From assembly GCA_946965045.2 (NCBI GenBank), contig OX337232.1:2170001-2234000 (forward strand): 64,000 nt of DNA. Direction: 5' to 3'. The DNA comes from Epithemia pelagica. Lineage: Eukaryota; Protista; Bacillariophyta. Shown in pieces: positions 51,312 to 62,004 of this stretch. Positions within the stretch are counted from its first letter, which is position 1; each line of letters opens with the position of its first letter. Both the position numbers and the translations under genes were made by a program. A model generated the notes under the pieces. The model did no database searches and was not told the origin of the DNA. It saw nothing but the letters and a program-made list of their open reading frames with translations.

Positions 51312-51460
51312 GGTCGATTGTTGCAAGAGAGACATCGAACAGGTTGATGGTGTGTGACGCAACTGGCATTCGAGGCTCGAGGCTCGAGCTCGTATTACTC
51401 GTACTCGCACTCGTAACTCGTTATTTTTTATTTTTGTAGTTGACTTTAGCACAGACATAA

Positions 51461-51951
51461 GGCCGTTCCTTGATCTTCTGCAAAAACAAAAGTTGGAGGG
51501 TGACACGTCACAAAAAACCCGGAAATATGGCGTCAAATCCGGGTTCGACGCTGTTTCAGCTTTTGAGGCTGCAAAAGTTGGGTCCAACTTTTGCAGGCCG
51601 GCAAAAGCTGAGCAGACATTAGGGATAGTGCTTTCTTCTTGCTAGTGTACATTGGGCCCTACAGAAACAAAAATGACGGTTTAGGATTTGAACGGCGCGC
51701 GTTCGACTCCAACGGTCCCCCTAACCTCAATGAAGAGGAAGACGGAACGTCCTCCTAATGTCTTACTTTGATAATTGTAGTATTCAAATCATCAAAGTGA
51801 ATATGGGGACTATTGGGGGCCTTGGGGGAAAAAGTGCGGTTATAGGTTTTGGTTTTGTAAATGCCAAAGGACGGCGTGTCGCGCAATTGTCTACAAAAAG
51901 GTGAGATGTCATGTGTCGATTTTTGTTTTTGCAGAATATCAAGGAACGGCC
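51461..51951. mobile_element. PIF/Harbinger-type MITE (~491 bp)
   Basis: TIRs ggccgttccttgat[c/a]ttctgcaaaaacaaaa (one mismatch), TAA direct repeat on both flanks (51458-60, 51952-54), no coding capacity. Confidence 0.88.
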
Positions 51952-52372
51952 TAACTGCATTCTTCTTTGTTGCACTACACTACCACGTCATTTCCATCTT
52001 CTGTTTTCTGTTCTCCATTCTCTATTCTCCAACAACTTGTCTCTTCTGGTACGACAAAGTTAACTCGGGACCGAAAGGAGACTCACGAATGCTTCCTCTC
52101 CCCCCAGCCTTGAAGTTGACGGACTCAATTGTTATCGCCTGCCCGATCAAGACTACGACCAAAGAAAAGGAGATAGCCGTTGGAAACGCGGGGCGTCCCT
52201 CCCGGATCCTACCTTTTGGTATCATCGATCGCAATCGCATTTGGTATAAGATCCACCATACCAAAAACCAAAGTGTTGATGGCAACATGACAATCCCAAT
52301 CCCACTCACTTTGGCAGGCATAACAAAAACATCCGATCAACCAGAACCACCGTCACCAGCGGCCTTCTCCTA

Positions 52373-52735
52373 CGACGCGCACCAACTGGCAACCACGCAC
52401 TTCAAGATCAACGTCAGAGAATCCCCAAAAACCCCAGAACCAACCAAGAGCTCACTCTTCCAATTCACTACGTTCGGACGGCAAAGGCTTGATCACCTTT
52501 GGCGCCGTTCAGAGAATTTTAAGAGGATTTTTGCCACTCCCACAGTTCCCACAATTTTCTTTTTTTTCTCCTCGACGCGCACCAACTGGCAACCACGCAC
52601 TTCAAGATCAACGTCAGAGAATCCCCAAAAACCCCAGAACCAACCAAGAGCTCACTCTTCCAATTCACTACGTTCGGACGGCAAAGGCTTGATCACCTTT
52701 GGCGCCGTTCAGAGAATTTTAAGAGGATTTTTGCC
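52373..52735. repeat. 163-bp direct repeats at 200-bp period in the 5' leader of the retroelement
   Basis: cgacgcgcaccaactggc...ggatttttgcc at 52373-52535 and 52573-52735. Confidence 0.95.
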
Positions 52736-52958
52736 TTCTTGTTCTTGCTTGTGCTCGCTTCGCTCCCATCATGTCTTCGACCTCTCCTTCTCGCTCCCCT
52801 CCGCCTGATGACGATGCTCTTTTGTCGTCGTTGGTCGCGTCGGCTTCGATTGCAACGCCTGGCGTTGCGGCCCCTCGCGTTTCCTCGGGTGCTCCAGGGG
52901 GGACCGTGGTCAAATCACGTTTGCTCCTGATCCAAGTGCTTCGGAGTTTGGTTCCAAA

Positions 52959-55171
52959 GTGGATTCGGCCTCGCGTGATACGTCGGATGTGTCGAGTAAG
53001 TTTGGTATCGTTGTTCTGCCCGTTCAAGACAAGAAGCTTCTTTGCCTCGGCATCAAGAGGGGGGGAAACACCTTTTGCATCGACCCCAAGTGCTCTAAAG
53101 CCGGGGACCATGGCATGGGTGTCCCCCCTCATGACCTTGGCGTTGCGGGAGGCGTGTATATCATGAAGAATACTGCCTCAGCCTTTTGTTCACCCGTGGT
53201 TCCGATGGACATGGTCAGTCCTGAGGTAGTGAACAAACTGAAGGAGGAAAAGCACTCCTTGAGTGATTGGATCAAGAAGTTCTTGGTCCTGCGTCGACTT
53301 GATCACATCAAGTCTGAAGGCGTTTCCTCCCCTTCTTTTGAAGATGAGGAGTCAAGGGTTGTGAAAGCAACCGTTCTTGATACTCCTATGACTACCACCA
53401 AGTCCATGCGAAAAACTTCCGTCACCTTTGCGGTTGACAACTTCTCGCCGCATCGGAAGATCCTCGCGGGCGATATCACCGAGGTTGTCCGTAGAGTCCA
53501 ACAAGACCCCTCCATCATCCCCACGGTGGTCCGTGAGGTAGAAGATTCAGTGATGGAGGCTGGCGAATTGATCCAGGCTCTATCAAAGGATCAATCCCAA
53601 GCCAAGAAGGAAACAGTGAATTCCGTGGAGTCACTGGGCCTTCAACTTGAGAAATTGCAAATGGAGATTGGGCCGAGGGAGGAATTGCAGGAAGAATTCC
53701 AAGCCCCTACCCTGTGGGGTATCATCCAGGCCATCACCGGCTCCCTCTCCCAGTCCAAACCTTCTGTCCAGCTAGAGGCTACCGAGGAGGATAAAATTCT
53801 TCAAATTGAAGCAGACCTTTCGAAGACGGGGACCTTTGTGCAATCCCTGCAAATGGATACTTTGGCTCGCCTCCAGACGCTCCAAGCAGAATCAAAAGGA
53901 TGGGTTGACAGTCTCCGAACCAGTTTGGTCAAAGGATTACAAGGCCTGATTTCTCGTGTGGGAAATGTGGAACAACAGGTGGTGGCTATTTCCCAGCAGC
54001 AAGCTGCCTCTAGTTCCATGGGCTCCGGTGCATTTGGATTGAACAGTGCTCATCTGTCATCAAGCAATTCGAGTAACAGTAACTTGGCTACAAAGACGGC
54101 GGCAATGGAAACGGAATTACGTGCTCTACAGGCCCTGGTTCAACAAGGTCAGCTCGAATTGCAAAGGATGAAATCCAAGGTCGATTCTAGCGCCATTAAA
54201 TTTGGGAACTTGGGTTTGTCATCCATTGATGACTGCAAGGCCTGGGTGGCAATGAAGTTTGGCTCTCGTTCCTATGGATTACTCTTCGATATCTGTCTCG
54301 TTTTGGAATGGTGTGCTTCGCAAGAAAACGGGGATGTCCTCAGCATGCTAACTACAATGGAGAAAAGGCACAAGATGCAGATCTCCACCACCAACGATGC
54401 GAGAGCACTCTACGCCATGAAGCTGGAGTTCCCACAAATCTTGTACAAAGATTTGCCTGGGACCGGGAAAGATCCATCCTTTTTAACCGCAATGAAGGAC
54501 CATGACGATTGGGAATCGCCAGAAACCGGCGTCCGTGACCGAATTATCCACAAATTGGGTAGCATGCATTCGATGTTCGGGGAACAAATCTCCGTCACCA
54601 TGGAGCAGGAGCCCGAGGCTCGCTCACTAGCGATGTCAATGCTGTCAATGTCCATTGGTTGTTGTCGTGAGCTCATCAATTACTTCGACAAAACCATGAA
54701 TGAGTTAACGACCAAATCGAAGTTCACCAAGAAAAAGGCCTTTAGTTTAGTGACTCAAGTGGTTCGTCGGTTCTTCCTTGACTTGTACAAGGTTTGCGCC
54801 CAGGTCTACTCATCGCTCTCTACAGCGGACAGTGCCGGGCAGTGTGCATGGATGTTGTATGGGGTTCTCCGAACCCATGACATCATGACGGAGTATTCTC
54901 AGGCAAGGTTCAAAAACCACCCCTCGGTGTCTAGTGAATATATCCGATCTTATCCACTAATTCGGGATTTGAATCGCTCAAGACGCTGGAAGACAAGGTT
55001 GATCATCACAAGCAAACGCTTGGTCAAATCACCAAGGATTGTCAAGCAGCGAAGAAGGCGGCGGACACCGCGAATAGCACCGTCGATACGCTCAAGAAGG
55101 AATTACAAGAACTCAAACGCAACAACAAGAAGCGTCAGGGCAACTCTGGTGGTGCTGGTGACGCCTCTTGA
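52959..55171 (+). CDS. Gag-like ORF1 of the YR retrotransposon, with a 1-nt deletion near 54948
   Basis: N-terminal CLG...FC....C....H motif and coiled coils. At SEYIR the sequence CGA TC TTA continues in the -1 frame as LSTNSGFESLKTLEDKV...LKKELQELK...GDAS* (TGA 55169-71). Confidence 0.75.
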
Positions 55172-58100
55172 AATCTAGGAGCATCTAAATTAGGACCGGA
55201 TGATTCTACAATCGAAGACTCCTATTTAGATGCTCTTAGTGTAGCGTCGTCTGTGACCACAGCTACAGAAACATTTCCGTTCACCCCTCCCCGTGTCCGG
55301 CCCAATCCTCCGAGGGATATCTCCTGTCCCCGACCCACAAAGCGAATGGTGGACCGGGGGGAGCGTGTCTTCCGAGAAGATCTCTCTTGCCTATTGCTGG
55401 GGCAAAGCAGCTGCTATTGGGGCCTGGCCTTAAATCCAGGCGACTGGAGCGGCATTTACATGCTTAGCTCTGACTATGCCGCTCGACGGGCTGATCCTTT
55501 CTGGTGGTGTGTCCCTGATTACTTCAAAGACAAGTTGTTTCTGGTCCCAAGTATCGACATGGTGTTGGGCCGCGGGCTTATTTCCGTGGTTCTCCTCGAA
55601 GGCGATCCGGATTTCTTGTCCTCACAACTGGTGTCTATGCCGCGTGATTGGGCTGTGCTTTTCTTATTGCCTTCCGGGTGGACTCGTCCGTTGTTGCCTG
55701 ATGTGACCTGGATCACAGTCACTCACAAGCAATGCGGGGGTATTACCTCCACTCGAGTCAACATTGGTAGACGGCATGTCCCTCCTCTTCATTTCAAAAC
55801 AACGGTGCGGCGGTCTATTTCTTCCGTCCTTGACCATTCGATTCGACCACAATACTGCACTGATGCCGGGCCTGACGAGCCACATTACTTGGGGGTTAGC
55901 AGTTTGTTGACTTGGGCCCTTGATCGACCTATTCTGCTCCCTACCACCTTCTTCAAATCTGGATGGGGCTACCGACGACTTTCCCCTGGGGAACTGGGGA
56001 CTGCCTTTGATTTACCTTTATGGTTGGATCCTTCCTCTCCTCCCTTTGTTTGGTGGCGCAGCCAATTGCTCTTTCCTCGCACGATTCCTATTAAGATCCC
56101 GTCTACCATTTTGTCCGCGGCCTTGCCTCACTTGCTCCCCGTGTTGGTCCATCACACTTGCGAGCATGCGTGTGTCAAACGTGACCCCACACCGCTTTCT
56201 CCTCCTACTCCCAAACGTGGTCGTTGGCTTCCTCTTTCTGTTGAAACGGTGCAAGATGGCGTCGTGGGTACGTGGCTCCCGGCCATCCGGAGCTTTCTCC
56301 CTCACTCTGCGTGGTTGGACGAGTCGTTGATTGCTGCGCAGGCCACCAAATCGGATGATGCCATTACCCCGTTTTGGCTTTGGGACAAGCGCATCCAGGG
56401 CTTTTTCCCTTGGCTCACCACCCGCGCGTTGGACGGTTTCCGTCTCCTGGCTGTTCGCTGGTGGAGACGTTCCCTTTTTCGGAGTTTTACGGCTTATTTG
56501 CGCTCCCGATTTGGAGCCTCATGGTTGGATTTGTTGACTGTGGGCGCAAAGGCTCAAGGGGGGGATATTTTCTCTTTGCAAGACGTCCGCCTCGCCAGTT
56601 GTTCCGTTCTGTCTCAGCTGCTCGGCGCCTCTTGGTGGGAATGGGATCATGGATCCTCACTAATCTTCTGGCGGTGGAATGGCCTAGAGCAACAACGGAA
56701 CGCGCACTTTGGCCAACCCATTCGTGTGGCAGCCCCTCTCCCCTCCAACAAACGGCCTCAACGTCCTCCCGCTCCCGACTCGGTCCCACGGGTGGCCGCG
56801 AAACTTGCTAAAGTGTTGCATCGGGGCTACTTCGATCAAGGACAACCGATCCAGAGTCTTACGGATTTCTCTGATGTTCCGAAGGGCGATTCGGATATCC
56901 GGATGGTCTATAACGGAACTAGTAGTGGGCTCAATGACGCCCTTTGGGCGCCAAACTTTTGGCTCCCCACCGCTGAGTCTTCCTTGCGATTACTCACCAG
57001 CGAGTCCTACTGTGGGGATATGGACCTGACTGAAATGTTTCTCAACTTCCCCATGGACGTTAATCTCCGTCCATACGCTGGAGTTGATCTCCACCCCATC
57101 GTCAATGCTCTTCCCGCAGATGCGCTGACCCACCGCAACTCGGACCAAGTTCGTTGGAATCGTCTTTTCATGGGCATGCTCCCCAGCCCGTATCACTCTG
57201 TCGAACAATTTTACCTTGCCGAGGAAGTTGCAATTGGGTCCCCCTCGGAACCGGATAACCCATGTGGATTTGATGAGATCCGTTTCAACATACCAGGATC
57301 TTCAGACTACAACCCAGTGCTTCCCTGGACCATGAAGTGGAACACCAAATCTGATTCTATTGCTGGAGACTCCATCACCTACATGGATGATATTCGTATA
57401 GTGGGATCCTCTGCGGAGAATGCCTGGCAGGTAGCGCGACGGCTTGGTTCAAGGCTCCAATACTTTGGTATCCAGGATGCACCTAGAAAGCGTCGCCCTC
57501 CTTCAAAAACGCCTGGAGCATGGGCTGGCTCAGTGCAACATATCACCAAAGACGCCGTGTCTAAAACGGTAACTCAAGCCAAATGGGATAAAGGTCGAAA
57601 CATCATCGCGCCTTATGTGGAGGCGTTCAAACAAACCAACACCCTCCCAACCTTCTCCCACAAACAGATGCAGCGAGATGTGGGTTTTCTAGTCCATCTT
57701 GCCCTAACTTACGCCGCCCTTATGCCTTTCTTAAAGGGTTTTTACCTCACAATGAACAATTGGAGGGGAGGACGCAATGCTGATGGTTGGAAACTGAATG
57801 CACGAGAATGGATCTCGTTACTCCAAGTCAAGATGGCCGATCAAGAAGTCGATTCAATTTGCGGCCTGCTGGAGGACGATGAAGACAATCGTGACACCAA
57901 ATCCACAACACCAACTCAGCGCAGCAGTGCAAAGCCTCCTCAACAAATTCAAGCGGTTCCAAGGCTGCGTTCAGATATCAAAGCTATTGCCATCATGTTC
58001 GAAACCTCCAATCCGCCCATCATTCAAGTTCGCAGCTCTTCCATCTTTGTTGCTATCTACGGTGCAGGAGATGCGTCCGGAACTGGGTTTGGCTCTGCTA

Positions 58101-59147
58101 TCCTCCTACCTCAAAAGAGCTTATCTTACAGGATTGGCGTATGGCGACATGACGATGTGGTTGGTGAATCCTCGAATTGGAAAGAATTCACAAACTGTGT
58201 CGAGGCAATGGAAGAAGAGGCGGAAAAGGGAAACCTCTCATCAACGGAGCTCTTCTTCTTCACAGACAATACTACCGTAGAGAGATGTTTCTACAAAGGT
58301 TCATCGTCAAGCAAAAAATTACTGGACCTAATAATTCAACTTCGACGACTGGAAATGCGCTATTCCCTCCGCTTGCACATCTCTCATGTGTCGGGCAAAC
58401 GCATGATCGCCTGGGGAGTAGATGGCATTTCTAGAGGACAACTTAATGAAGGAGTCATGGCCGGCAAGCCAATGCTTTCTTTCTTACCCCTACACAAAAC
58501 ACCTATGCAAATGTCACCGACACTATTTGAATGGGTGAAATCCTGGTTGGGCCCCAAGACTGAACTACTTACCCCTATGGACTGGTTCACCACGGGCCAT
58601 GACATACGGGGATGGACTCTCCCATCCGAATACAATCAACTGTCCCTGCCAATCCTCAGGCCAGGACATTTTGTATGGAGTCCTCCACCGGGAGCAGCAG
58701 ACGTGGCAATCGAGCAACTTCGTAAGGCCCGGCACAAGCGTCAAAGATCTACCCACATCTTTTTCTGTCAACGCCTGCTGACTCCCAAGTGGTACAAGCA
58801 ACTACACAAAGCTTGCGATTTAGTAATTGAAATACCGGCAGTGACGAGATTTTGGCCAAAGGAAAACTTCGAACCCCTCATCATTGGTTTTGTTTTCCCT
58901 TTCCTTAGGTCAAAACCCTGGCAACTCCGAGGTACACCTTAGACGGACTCTGCGAAAACTGTGGCCGGAGGATGAAGTGGCAGGACGGAATCTTCTGCGG
59001 AAATTTCTCGTTTAAGCTTGGAAAATGGGATCCATGTCAGAAGTCATGGTGTCCCGAGTGTTATTCTTTGAAAGAGGACACAAGTTTCTACATCGCGAGC
59101 AAGTTTACCCTAAAAGAAGAAAACGACGACGATTGACTGGTAGCTAG
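55172..59147 (+). CDS. Pol ORF: degenerate C5-MTase-like region, RT, RNase H, adenine-MTase-like domain; C-terminal tail broken near 58940 and at 59013
   Basis: RT: VPKGDSDIRMVYNG, DMDLTEMFLNF, FMG..PSPY, YMDD (57380). RNase H: DASGTGFG, NWKE, FTDN, DGISRG. MT-like: VWSPPP. Uninterrupted frame 55172-58942. Confidence 0.9.
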
Positions 59148-60465
59148 CGAGTGGCGGTCCCGAACCAAAGACACATCTGAAGATTTCGTTCGAGCCAGAA
59201 AGGGAGATCACCTAATGACCCACTTCGAATGCGACTTGTGCATCTTTAGAAAGCTTCGGCACGTCAACCCAGACCCTCAACAACCTCAGGACCAATATCT
59301 CCTCAAGTGCATCCGAAGAATGAACCTAGACGCATTCTGGAGCCGCGCTTCCAGCACGGTCAAACAGAACCACTTACTCGCCACCCGAATGATTGACCGC
59401 TCCTCCAAGGTTGGAATCCCTTATGGTCCTTTCATTCGACGTCAGCCCTTCCCTTCGTTCGATCATTGCGGATACCACACCGCTTACCTAATGCTTGATG
59501 CTTCCCTGGATCAAGGACGATATCACAAGGATCACAAACAATTCGACTCCATTCGAAAAATACGATCCACTTATTCAAACTTTATCAGAACAACCACTTC
59601 CACAATTGTTGGCCAACTACCCCTCACTCTTCTAGACAATGACGGAAAATCTTCATTGCGCATTGGCTCCGACGAAAGTGGTTCCTTGTGGTTTGCCCGA
59701 TTCACCGAAGGTTGTAAACAGAGAATGGGCCAGGACTGGAGACCGGACCAAGCTATTACCCCGGAATTAATGATCGCTCTCCTTGATCATTTGGAACACC
59801 TCATTATTAATGCATCTCGACAGGAAGACTCCTATTTCATGATTATGGCTGGAGCGTACTTTATCACTTGCTTCGTCCTTTCCTTGCGTGGTCCAGAGGG
59901 CCTCCTGTTGGATCTAGAAGGCATTTTGAAGCACGGCGATGCCCAATCGCACAAGGACTGCGTCGTCATTGTTCTATGGGGACAAGTAAAAGGCGAACAT
60001 ATCGAACGATCTCATCTCCTCCCTTCGATCAACACGACTGGGTCCGGACTGCAAGTTCGACGATGGATAAGAAGAGCAGTGGTCCTCGCTCAAGATAACT
60101 CAAGGAGCAGAGGACCTTTGATGCTCCACAAAAACGGTGACAACATCAAACCAAGACAACTGGACGACCTCCTTCATCAAACACTCACGGCCATCTATTC
60201 CACCTCTCCAGAACTGTTCCCCTCCACCGCCATCAGAAACAAAGAAGACATCGCTTTGAAATATTCTGCCTTCCGATCCTTCCGCAGAGGCTCCAACACA
60301 AGAGCCAAAGAAATGGGTGTCTCCGTCCCAGACACAGAAGTCGTCAACAGATGGCGTGGCCGTGAAAAGGCGGGGACTAGAAAACAAGGAGGTCCCATCG
60401 ACCAGATGTATTCAGACCTCTCCCTTTTGGTTGCACCATTCATCCGGTACACCAAAAACATGTAA
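58942..60465 (+). CDS. Tyrosine recombinase with Cys-rich N-terminus; in-frame TGA at 59134-36
   Basis: CENC...FCGNF...CQKSWCPECY, then stop, then FECDLCIF, LSLRGPEG (Arg I), RSFRRG, NRWR, MYSD (Tyr nucleophile). Confidence 0.88.
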
Positions 60466-61008
60466 CGAACACTCAAGATTCTCAACGGGGGGTTTTCGGG
60501 ACCAACAAGCTACCTTGGGCTGACATGGCAAAGCCCTGGTATCTTGCTCTGGGAGCTTCTACTCGGGTTCAACGAGAGGTGACCGCCTGCACTTCGGGGA
60601 CGACGATTGTATGGTGCTACCTGATCGTCCGCCCCGAGCTCAGTGGAGGGATCACGGGATCCTCTTGTTCGTTCCTAGGGTTTTGGCTTTTGGATCTGGT
60701 TCCCTCACTTTCATCTGAAAGCGACGACCCTTGCTGGTGAAGGATTCCATCCTTAACCCCCCACATTACGATTCAACTTAACAGTTGTGATCGGTTGAGT
60801 TTAAAAATCTTAAATTATCCTTTCTTTCTCTTCTCTCTTATTGGGGTACTCCGGACATGGATTGCCGCTTGGACCGTGACAAGGTGAAGAACATTGGCTA
60901 AGGGGAAGGAGCCTGACTGAGACTCAACAAAGGCCCCATTATTTCTGGTATGAGTATCCGTACAGTAGTATTAATACTTCCCGGTGTCGAGTCCTTTCAA
61001 GGAGGGAC

Positions 61009-61111
61009 CGCCCGGCGCGGAGGGTAGAATGACGAGGAGGGCAACGGTCGAGGAGGGCGCACGCCCGACAAGACAATTGCCCGTCGAGTCATTCTATCGA
61101 CAAGCCGGGCG
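61009..61111 (+). other. Long imperfect GC-rich hairpin in the 3' region of the retroelement
   Basis: Nested pairs cgcccggc/gccgggcg, tagaatgac/gtcattcta, gggcaa/ttgccc, gggc/gccc. Confidence 0.7.
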
Positions 61112-61169
61112 CGCCCGACGCGAGAGGACGGCCAGACACAGGGAAGTAGTAAACTTACTCCCTATCAAG

Positions 61170-61333
61170 CTGTGTAGGTAGTGAGAATTTCCTGGAAGCC
61201 ATGTCACAAAGTGTCACACAAGTGTCGCACAAGTGTCACACACGAGAGGGAACCCGCGCGACTCCTTCCCGGTCATACAAAAAATTCCTACTGTACTCCT
61301 AGTATAAAAATGTGAGACGAACTACCTACACAG
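61170..61333. repeat. 13-bp perfect inverted repeat enclosing ~4 copies of an ~11-bp tandem unit
   Basis: ctgtgtaggtagt (61170-82) / actacctacacag (61321-33); tgtcacacaag-like units at 61202-61243; no TSD found. Confidence 0.8.
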
Positions 61334-62004
61334 TCTGGTATGGATTAGTGTACTGTCTACTCATATATTACTATTATTTATTACGCCTACTCGTATGCAA
61401 TAAAAAATACAATTAATTCGTCCGTCGCTAGGGCGGAGCCAGGACCTTAGGAATAATCAAATTACAAATTCTCCTCTAACTTGCTTGTTGCAATGAACCA
61501 TGATCAATGATGTTGTTTGTTTCTATGGGTAGGGTTTTGTTTTCGTGGTTGCTCTGACAAGACCATGTTTGTTGTGGGCACCCTGGTTTGGTGCCCACAA
61601 ATCATGTGCATCAAAAATCAAGGTAAACTGGTGTGGGTCGGGCCTTTCCAGAATTGCCTCTCGGTTGCCCTTTTCTCTTGTCAACCAAATACTCTCCTCA
61701 TTCCGGATTCCCCATTGTAGTTGGGAAGGATCGGCATGCGAGGTACTCTTCGACTTATTCTCGGGGATGGGTTTGGTGGTCCCACACAGTGTTTCCGTGG
61801 TGGGATTGGAGGTTTTCCATCGGCGAAGTCGTGGGCATGACAGTGCAACGGGGTGAGTGGGAGATTGCTCGGGGAATTTGGTGGGGTTTCAGTCGACTCA
61901 CCTTTAGGTGATTCATTTGGCCCGGTCGTCGGAGGGACAGTCGTTTGGATGGCGGGAAACTCCGTCAGACAAGAGTTGGTATGACGTAAATATTTCTGGT
62001 TTGT

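Follow-up and report, generated by a model that had tools for sequence, protein, structure and literature searches.

A conserved Pol domain with a predicted cytosine-5 methyltransferase fold and no catalytic motifs in a diatom retrotransposon family

Introduction

A 64,000-nucleotide stretch of the genome of the diatom Epithemia pelagica (contig OX337232.1, positions 2,170,001 to 2,234,000; hereafter the window) carries a retrotransposon copy whose Pol protein begins with a region recalling, in a few short strings, the cytosine-5 methyltransferases (C5-MTases). Is this region a captured DNA methyltransferase (DNMT), and could it still methylate? An initial annotation had proposed a degenerate C5-MTase-like domain, probably catalytically dead but kept in frame and perhaps serving in DNA binding or as a methylation decoy, in an element comparable to the DNMT-carrying DIRS elements of dinoflagellates. 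Such elements do exist, as SymbioDIRS-Dnmt3 (PMC5890265). The proposed Rossmann-type similarity to C5-MTases was recovered with Foldseek against the PDB, with VIA-align and in the ESM Atlas, C5-MTases being the best matches each time, and the idea that the domain is kept in frame agrees with the selection described below.

Here we show that a conserved, selected domain with a predicted C5-MTase fold and without catalytic motifs is a constant part of a very large family of retrotransposon Pol proteins. We infer that this domain derives from a real DNMT and is no longer enzymatically active; the role of the apparently dead domain is a matter of speculation. Our preferred reading, to which we give a probability of about 0.72, is that amino acids (aa) 31-266 of Pol form a very diverged C5-MTase fold that is most likely a pseudo-enzyme with a job in the life cycle of the element. 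The two features on which the argument turns are the pol open reading frame (ORF) and the domain:

55253-58942, + strand: pol ORF, 1229 codons, from its translation
55343-56050, + strand: C5-MTase-fold domain, Pol aa 31-266 (the modelled unit), from the AlphaFold2 model and structural matches; the core of the family profile ends just after F-D-L-P

The Pol N-terminus is one conserved domain under purifying selection

The domain is the first folded part of Pol and begins about 57 residues past the gag stop. In a six-frame search of the same genome, the N-terminal 389 residues were present in full in at least 26 copies, which are 54-98% identical and mostly free of stop codons. Aligning these copies left about 130 invariant columns, and a profile search added far more distant lineages from the same genome. 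We then compared the profile exhaustively with 1.84 billion representatives (cluster-50); 568 of these matched at E<=1e-3, and 230 still did so at E<=1e-10. Profile positions 2-230, up to just past F-D-L-P, are covered by most of the matches. A search with the reverse transcriptase (RT)-RNase H part of Pol yielded no fewer than 1,004 Pol relatives; PF00078 occurs in two of these. The N-terminal domain was present in every one of the 67 full-length relatives (at least 1150 aa). All 120 Pol relatives among the matches listed are unnamed or called 'hypothetical protein', and none of them has PF00145.

The ratio of nonsynonymous to synonymous divergence (dN/dS), taken from pairs of copies with unsaturated synonymous divergence, was 0.05 across the domain for the window copy and L003 (dN 0.033, dS 0.68) and 0.04 for L014 and L019. 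At least 12 nearly invariant residues persist at pairwise identities of 23-36%. A set of nearly invariant polar residues comprises R115, H128, T135, R157, R168, R211 and E217, several of which occupy motif VI and motif VIII positions. The N-terminal stretch of Pol is one conserved domain, beyond any chance pattern of short strings. Strong purifying selection, together with presence in every full-length relative, argues that it does a job in the element life cycle, and the nearly invariant polar residues lead to the same inference.

These data also bear on whether the domain is a decaying, functionless remnant that stays in frame only as part of the Pol ORF. Such decay would account for the disappearance of the catalytic motifs (see below), but it is already contradicted by conservation: neither the dN/dS of 0.04-0.05, nor the persistence of the nearly invariant residues at such low identity, nor the occurrence of the domain in all 67 full-length relatives and in several distant lineages is what decay would leave behind. 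We find this explanation hardly credible.

The predicted fold matches C5-methyltransferases, including their small domain

To model the domain we used AlphaFold2 without templates. A shallow alignment of same-genome copies (A1) gave a predicted local distance difference test score (pLDDT) of 38 and no usable model. Only a diverse alignment worked (A3; 59 sequences whose identity to the window copy is 22-69%, and 22-36% in most rows), yielding for 55343-56050 a mean pLDDT of 92.6 and a predicted template modelling score of 0.85, with all five models at 91-93. The chain runs through strand 1, a helix, strand 2, helices, strand 3, a helix, strand 4, a helix, strand 5 and a strand 6-7 hairpin, after which 60 largely irregular residues with short strands lead into a final strand-helix unit, the place of motif IX. 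The model combines a Rossmann-type core with a small domain that includes motif IX.

The six best Foldseek matches in the PDB were all either M.HhaI or DNMT2 (Entamoeba, human, Spodoptera and S. pombe), with a best E of 4.7e-6 over about 300 aligned columns and a template modelling score (TM) of about 0.5; M.HaeIII and DNMT3A came next, among generic methyltransferases. An exhaustive VIA-align comparison with 48,161 representative PDB chains, run without the Foldseek prefilter, separated the classes clearly. Ranks 1-17 were all C5-MTases, with Z 7.5-10.8 (8.8-10.8 for ranks 1-16) and 198-220 of the 236 residues aligned: M.HhaI (Z 10.8, 210 aligned), DNMT3B (10.8), M.MpeI (10.6), DNMT3A (10.4), DNMT2 (9.7-9.8), DNMT1 (9.6), ZMET2 (9.0) and MET1 (8.9). 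These matches span model residues 1-236, whereas generic Rossmann methyltransferases reached at most Z 7.4 over about 125 residues within model residues 10-150, the best non-C5 methyltransferase having Z 7.4 over 128. In the ESM Atlas the best cluster was 100% PF00145 (TM 0.62, 197 aligned), and the other clusters stayed at TM <=0.44. As modelled, the similarity is specific to the C5-MTase architecture including the small domain, beyond the shared Rossmann core.

Set beside M.HhaI, DNMT2 and DNMT3A-B (Z 9.7-10.8, 198-214 aligned), the diatom domain shares the large and the small domain and, at the motif IX position, the pattern R-x-L-x3-E…F-x-x-P. It differs in its sequence identity of about 10% and in having none of the motif I glycines, the Pro-Cys-Gln loop, E-N-V, Q-x-R-x-R or G-N-A-V. 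It is also shorter, about 236 residues compared with the usual 320 or so of PF00145 catalytic domains.

The catalytic motifs of C5-methyltransferases are missing

The motif positions within the domain are as follows:

55391-55432, + strand: LLLGQSSCYWGLAL, motif I position, Pol aa 47-60; strand 1, loop and helix A in the model
55580-55606, + strand: ISVVLLEGD, motif IV position, Pol aa 110-118; strand 4, then E-G-D
55658-55687, + strand: motif VI position; strand 5 (model 105-109), then x-G-x-x-R, with no E-N-V
55718-55756, + strand: VTHKQCGGITSTR, motif VIII position, Pol aa 156-168; strand 6-7 hairpin, H-x3-G-G-x-T
55961-56017, + strand: GWGYRRLSPGELGTAFDLP, motif IX, Pol aa 237-255; G-W-G-x-R-x-L-x3-E-L-x2-A-F-D-L-P
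56081-56113, + strand: TIPIKIPSTIL, motif X-like helix, Pol aa 277-287; from the hhalign register and family conservation, beyond the modelled residues

The five strings named here are those of the initial annotation, which had likened them to motifs I, IV, VIII, IX and X; all lie in the Pol frame and in that order (aa 47-287). The motif IX string is where it had been described except for its start, which was put at 55967, two codons inside the true start at 55961. Four of the five (I, IV, VIII and IX) coincide with the elements of the model on which they should fall, given the topology of M.HhaI, and were placed by element order.

Residue frequencies from about 59-150 family members show what each position has become. 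At motif I (model strand 15-20, helix 25-29) the family consensus is C-G-V-x-F-E-x-x-P-x-W; the loop after strand 1 reads F/G-E/Q-x-x-P-x-W, with W26 kept in 56 of 58 sequences and no conserved Gly. Strand 4 (model 82-86) is followed family-wide by S/E-G-S/D and then at once by a helix (from 89), G87 being kept in 119/123. After strand 5, x-x-x-R-R stands where E-N-V would be expected, and R115 is retained in 54/58 and 111/129 sequences (86-93%). In the hairpin (model strands 122-127 and 138-144), H128, G132, G133 and T135, each 87-97% conserved in about 150 representatives, replace Q-x-R-x-R. Motif IX, with R211, L213 and E217 conserved at about 94-98% and F222 and P225 also kept, is the only motif with a recognizable, if weak, sequence signal; in distant lineages it reads R-K-L-x-x-R-E-L-A-x-A-L-D-F-P, nearer the canonical form. 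The motif X-like helix has the consensus V-P-L-Q-I-x-R, with Pro in about 90% of 96 sequences, in place of G-N-A-V, and sits opposite the GNAVPP region in hhalign.

The absence of Pro-Cys at motif IV, which the initial annotation had noticed in this copy, extends to the whole family. None of 123 representatives has Pro-Cys there, nor do lineages L042-L047; in four of the 123 a Cys precedes this position by one residue, as G-C-G. The connection between strands 4 and 5 is 18 residues long, compared with about 33 in M.HhaI, so the catalytic loop is effectively deleted. Family members have neither the FxGxG glycine-rich loop for S-adenosylmethionine (SAM) after strand 1 nor E-N-V after strand 5; the corresponding F4, G6, G8, G9, N126 and V127 are invariant in 53 real C5-MTases, and E125 is kept in at least 90% of these. 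From the model, canonical covalent C5 methylation looks impossible and SAM binding unlikely. The loss of the Pro-Cys nucleophile and its loop, of the ENV glutamate and of the glycine-rich SAM loop makes a pseudo-enzyme the most likely state, in line with the catalytically dead domain first suggested.

Could the domain nonetheless be an enzyme, either a methyltransferase or another nucleic-acid-modifying activity, with an active site rebuilt from S/E/C86, R115, H128 and T135? Several polar residues, located where motifs IV, VI and VIII would be, are nearly invariant in about 150 representatives, which is more than a scaffold seems to need; a minority of members place a Cys after strand 4 in the G-C-G just described, and D or E is common just after strand 2, the site at which SAM-dependent enzymes hold the ribose; a dN/dS of about 0.05 can be counted on the same side. 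However, the glycine-rich loop and the catalytic loop are both absent, the strand 2 acid is not invariant, and neither the motif IV nor the motif VI position has a conserved Cys. To our knowledge, no C5 or RNA 5-methylcytosine enzyme works without a Cys at one of these positions. We consider a surviving activity unlikely and retain the pseudo-enzyme as the better account.

Sequence-level support is limited to motif IX and the following helix

We also compared the family with real C5-MTases by hhalign, using as reference 53 bona fide enzymes (three from this genome and 50 homologues of one of them). The best single local alignment consisted of motif IX plus the next helix, pairing G-x-R-x-L-x3-E-L…F-D-L-P…V-P-L-Q of the family with R-x-L-T-V-R-E…S-F-P-D…G-N-A-V-P-P of the enzymes, at P 0.014 with A3 and P 0.0075 with an extended alignment that added distant lineages. 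A reversed template scored 17.6 against 24.8 for the real one, and one of 40 column-shuffled templates reached the real score. Although in the right place and register, this signal is weak evidence. In near-global alignments the N-terminal motifs fell out of register, and sequence support is therefore limited to motif IX/X.

Several other searches were silent. Apart from PF00145 (below), Pfam families, among them any methyltransferase family, gave no match at E<=10 for the domain in this copy, in 14 and 59 members and in five distant lineages. PHROGs held no match, and the ESM Atlas feature search returned no usable one. PDB sequence and profile searches with the RT-RNase H part and the putative recombinase ORF (see below) produced nothing meaningful.

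A number of results weigh against a C5-MTase-derived pseudo-enzyme. PF00145 itself had no match at E<=10 in this copy, in 14 or 59 members or in five distant lineages, and a PF00145 scan of the genome recovered 10 host DNMT stretches and none of the at least 30 retrotransposon copies. PDB sequence and profile searches with the domain alignments A1 and A3 returned only noise. Since the hhalign probability is just 3-5%, the case for common ancestry rests mainly on predicted structure. Within that structure, the motif-to-residue equivalences follow the order of secondary-structure elements, not a superposition, and the motif X helix lies outside the confident model. An acidic D/E shortly after strand 2 (motif II) occurs in about 59% of members, so SAM might still be bound. 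Finally, nucleic-acid binding is weakly suggested by the predicted isoelectric point (pI) of the family (median 9.1; real C5-MTases, 8.8), and the pI of this copy is 7.1.

Taken to its end, this line of argument would make the resemblance an analogy or a modelling artefact: an unrelated alpha/beta domain, or a generic Rossmann-like fold without DNMT ancestry. The uniformly negative sequence and profile searches and the low hhalign probability are what such a domain would give, and TM-scores of about 0.5-0.6 with deviations of 4-5 Å do not force a closer relationship. Set against this, five models built without templates agree at pLDDT >91, and their matches are specifically C5-MTases, through a small domain that generic Rossmann methyltransferases lack. 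The step down to the generic enzymes is abrupt: Z drops from 8.8-10.8 to 7.4, and the aligned length from about 210 residues to about 125. The sole sequence signal also coincides precisely with motif IX/X, with order and spacing as they should be. An accidental resemblance is accordingly quite improbable in our view, and a diverged C5-MTase fold is the reading that we carry forward.

Known counterparts and candidate roles

DNMT domains in retrotransposons have been described before. In both Symbiodinium DIRS elements and Klebsormidium long terminal repeat (LTR) elements, Pol contains DNMT3-type domains that are Pfam-detectable, selected and partly active (PMC5890265); the named elements are SymbioDIRS-Dnmt3 and SymbioLINE-Dnmt of dinoflagellates and KnitGypsy/Copia-Dnmt3 of Klebsormidium (de Mendoza et al. 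2018, PMC5890265). At least some of these retrotransposon DNMTs methylate CG de novo in yeast (PMC5890265). Diatoms are not mentioned in that study (de Mendoza et al. 2018, PMC5890265), and a 2025 survey gives the same picture (PMC12344493). Our literature search, with most subscription journals outside its reach, found no matching description of a DNMT or pseudo-methyltransferase in diatom DIRS elements.

The diatom family resembles SymbioDIRS-Dnmt3 in placing a C5-MTase-fold domain inside a retrotransposon Pol; the SymbioDIRS element also has a separate tyrosine-recombinase ORF. It differs in that its domain is invisible to PF00145, has no Pro-Cys, E-N-V or FxGxG, and stands at the extreme N-terminus of Pol. 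DIRS1-type elements carry another accessory domain, a Dam-like adenine 'MT' domain (Goodwin and Poulter; bioRxiv 10.64898/2026.05.21.726589). This too is a methyltransferase-related module in Pol, in tyrosine-recombinase retrotransposons, to which the diatom family would also belong; unlike the diatom domain, it belongs to the structurally unrelated N6-adenine class, follows RNase H and reportedly keeps its catalytic pocket.

How might an apparently dead methyltransferase fold serve a retrotransposon? Mammals offer a precedent in DNMT3L, a catalytically inactive paralogue of DNMT3 that acts as a regulatory partner of the active DNMT3A/B. In both cases a DNMT-derived fold minus its catalytic motifs would be retained for a non-enzymatic role, which DNMT3L is known to have; DNMT3L differs as a host gene, not a transposon module, and is outside the top 50 structural matches of the diatom domain. 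We speculate that the domain could have kept from its ancestor a capacity to hold on to nucleic acid or to a partner protein. One candidate ligand would be the complementary DNA (cDNA) or RNA of the element during reverse transcription and recombination, and the nearly invariant Arg/His/Thr set at motifs VI and VIII and the basic family-median pI fit retained nucleic-acid binding. A DNMT3L-like role as partner or decoy towards the host methylation machinery would be equally possible.

A bolder version holds that a whole, ocean-wide clade of tyrosine-recombinase retrotransposons exapted the fold of a silencing enzyme as the first module of Pol to act on host methylation, not as a passive scaffold. 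The domain might then serve as a DNMT3L-like partner or decoy for host DNMTs, or as a reader that directs integration or protects new cDNA from silencing based on 5-methylcytosine (5mC). We regard this version as doubtful.

Where the retrotransposon DNMT domains known from dinoflagellates and charophytes are active enzymes, here the same predicted fold is cryptic to annotation and its chemistry probably lost. The C5-MTase-fold module would be the first recognizable accessory domain for a family of more than 1,000 Pol relatives, and a transposon-borne pseudo-DNMT would join a short list of DNMT-derived non-enzymes. How diatom retroelements engage with 5mC-based silencing, or escape it, becomes a testable question. 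More generally, where Pfam fails on plankton mobile elements, structure prediction combined with deep family alignments can supply the annotation.

The retrotransposon copy and its surroundings

The copy has three ORFs: gag, pol and a downstream ORF of 416 codons. Its remaining features are listed here:

52043-60936, + strand: retrotransposon copy, about 8.9 kb; approximate limits, set by where its DNA resembles the sister copies on contigs C2 and C7
52959-55178, + strand: gag ORF, from its translation; the 3' end is out of the pol frame in this copy
55172-58942, + strand: open pol frame of 1256 codons, from the first codon after the gag UGA to the stop, by translation
57380-57394, + strand: RT motif YMDDI, Pol aa 710-714, by translation
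58067-58093, + strand: RNase H-type motif GDASG, by translation
58253-58270, + strand: RNase H-type motif TDN, by translation
59215-60465, + strand: 416-aa ORF, putative tyrosine recombinase, from motif reading

Pol is 43% identical over its full length to the relative P0021. Its match to RVT_1 in Pfam is weak (E 0.0052, below the cut-off), and no other Pfam family matches Pol, its N-terminal part, gag or the recombinase ORF. An RT with YxDD is accompanied by RNase H motifs, as expected of the DIRS order, and the 416-aa ORF is taken to be a tyrosine recombinase from its motifs; it had no sequence match in Pfam, PHROGs or the PDB. Terminal repeats, inverted or split direct, are characteristic of the DIRS order; in this copy we found no end-to-end repeat of at least 14 nt. 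Its 5' part is interrupted relative to the sister copies, so the copy is perhaps rearranged. The stretch appears in no RNA run and is present only in three DNA-type runs from one study.

At the gag-pol junction, reading the pol frame through a plausible gag C-terminus (…GGAGDAS) leads to a stop at UGA 55169-55171. Directly after it lies a 16-nt inverted repeat (55175-55190 and 55224-55239; 94% complementary, with a 33-nt loop). Gag and pol are in the same frame, divided by a single stop, in L003 (94% identical to this copy), most of the other copies and the metagenomic L031; stop-codon readthrough would fit such an arrangement.

Three further observations concern Pol. Between the methyltransferase-like domain and the RT, at 56270-56750 (aa ~340-500), there is a second region that is conserved and has no annotation, in which the family motif W-L-P…L-P-G-S-W-A-D…K-A-V-K-x-D-D-A precedes a helical part rich in Trp. 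Downstream of RNase H stands S-P-P-P-G-A-A-D-V-A (58679-58708, Pol aa 1143-1152), without a Pfam match. The 1256-codon pol frame of this copy is about 40-80 codons shorter than those of other intact copies (1295-1334) and P0021, and its Pol C-terminus may be truncated.

Elsewhere in the genome, three bona fide PF00145 genes (L032, L033 and L034), mutually 61-65% identical, cluster on contig C7 at 3046649-3096062. Two of the genes are neighbours, with the third at a distance of about 45 kb, and they are most closely related to bacterial-type C5-MTases 300-450 aa long.

The element also contains and adjoins several repeats. In its 5' region, a perfect 163-nt direct repeat with 200-nt spacing (52373-52735) apparently arose by duplication in place, and recently. 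Just upstream of the element, at 51458-51952, is a repeat of about 495 bp resembling a miniature inverted-repeat transposable element, with 52-nt terminal inverted repeats that are 81% complementary; at least 30 copies, 93-99% identical, are scattered across many contigs. The 3' end of the element is adjoined by a repeat of about 385 bp (60964-61349) that has many copies at 90-95% identity, sometimes in tandem. The sister copy on contig C2 has two such units just upstream of the element instead, and this repeat may be a preferred target or a part of the element ends.

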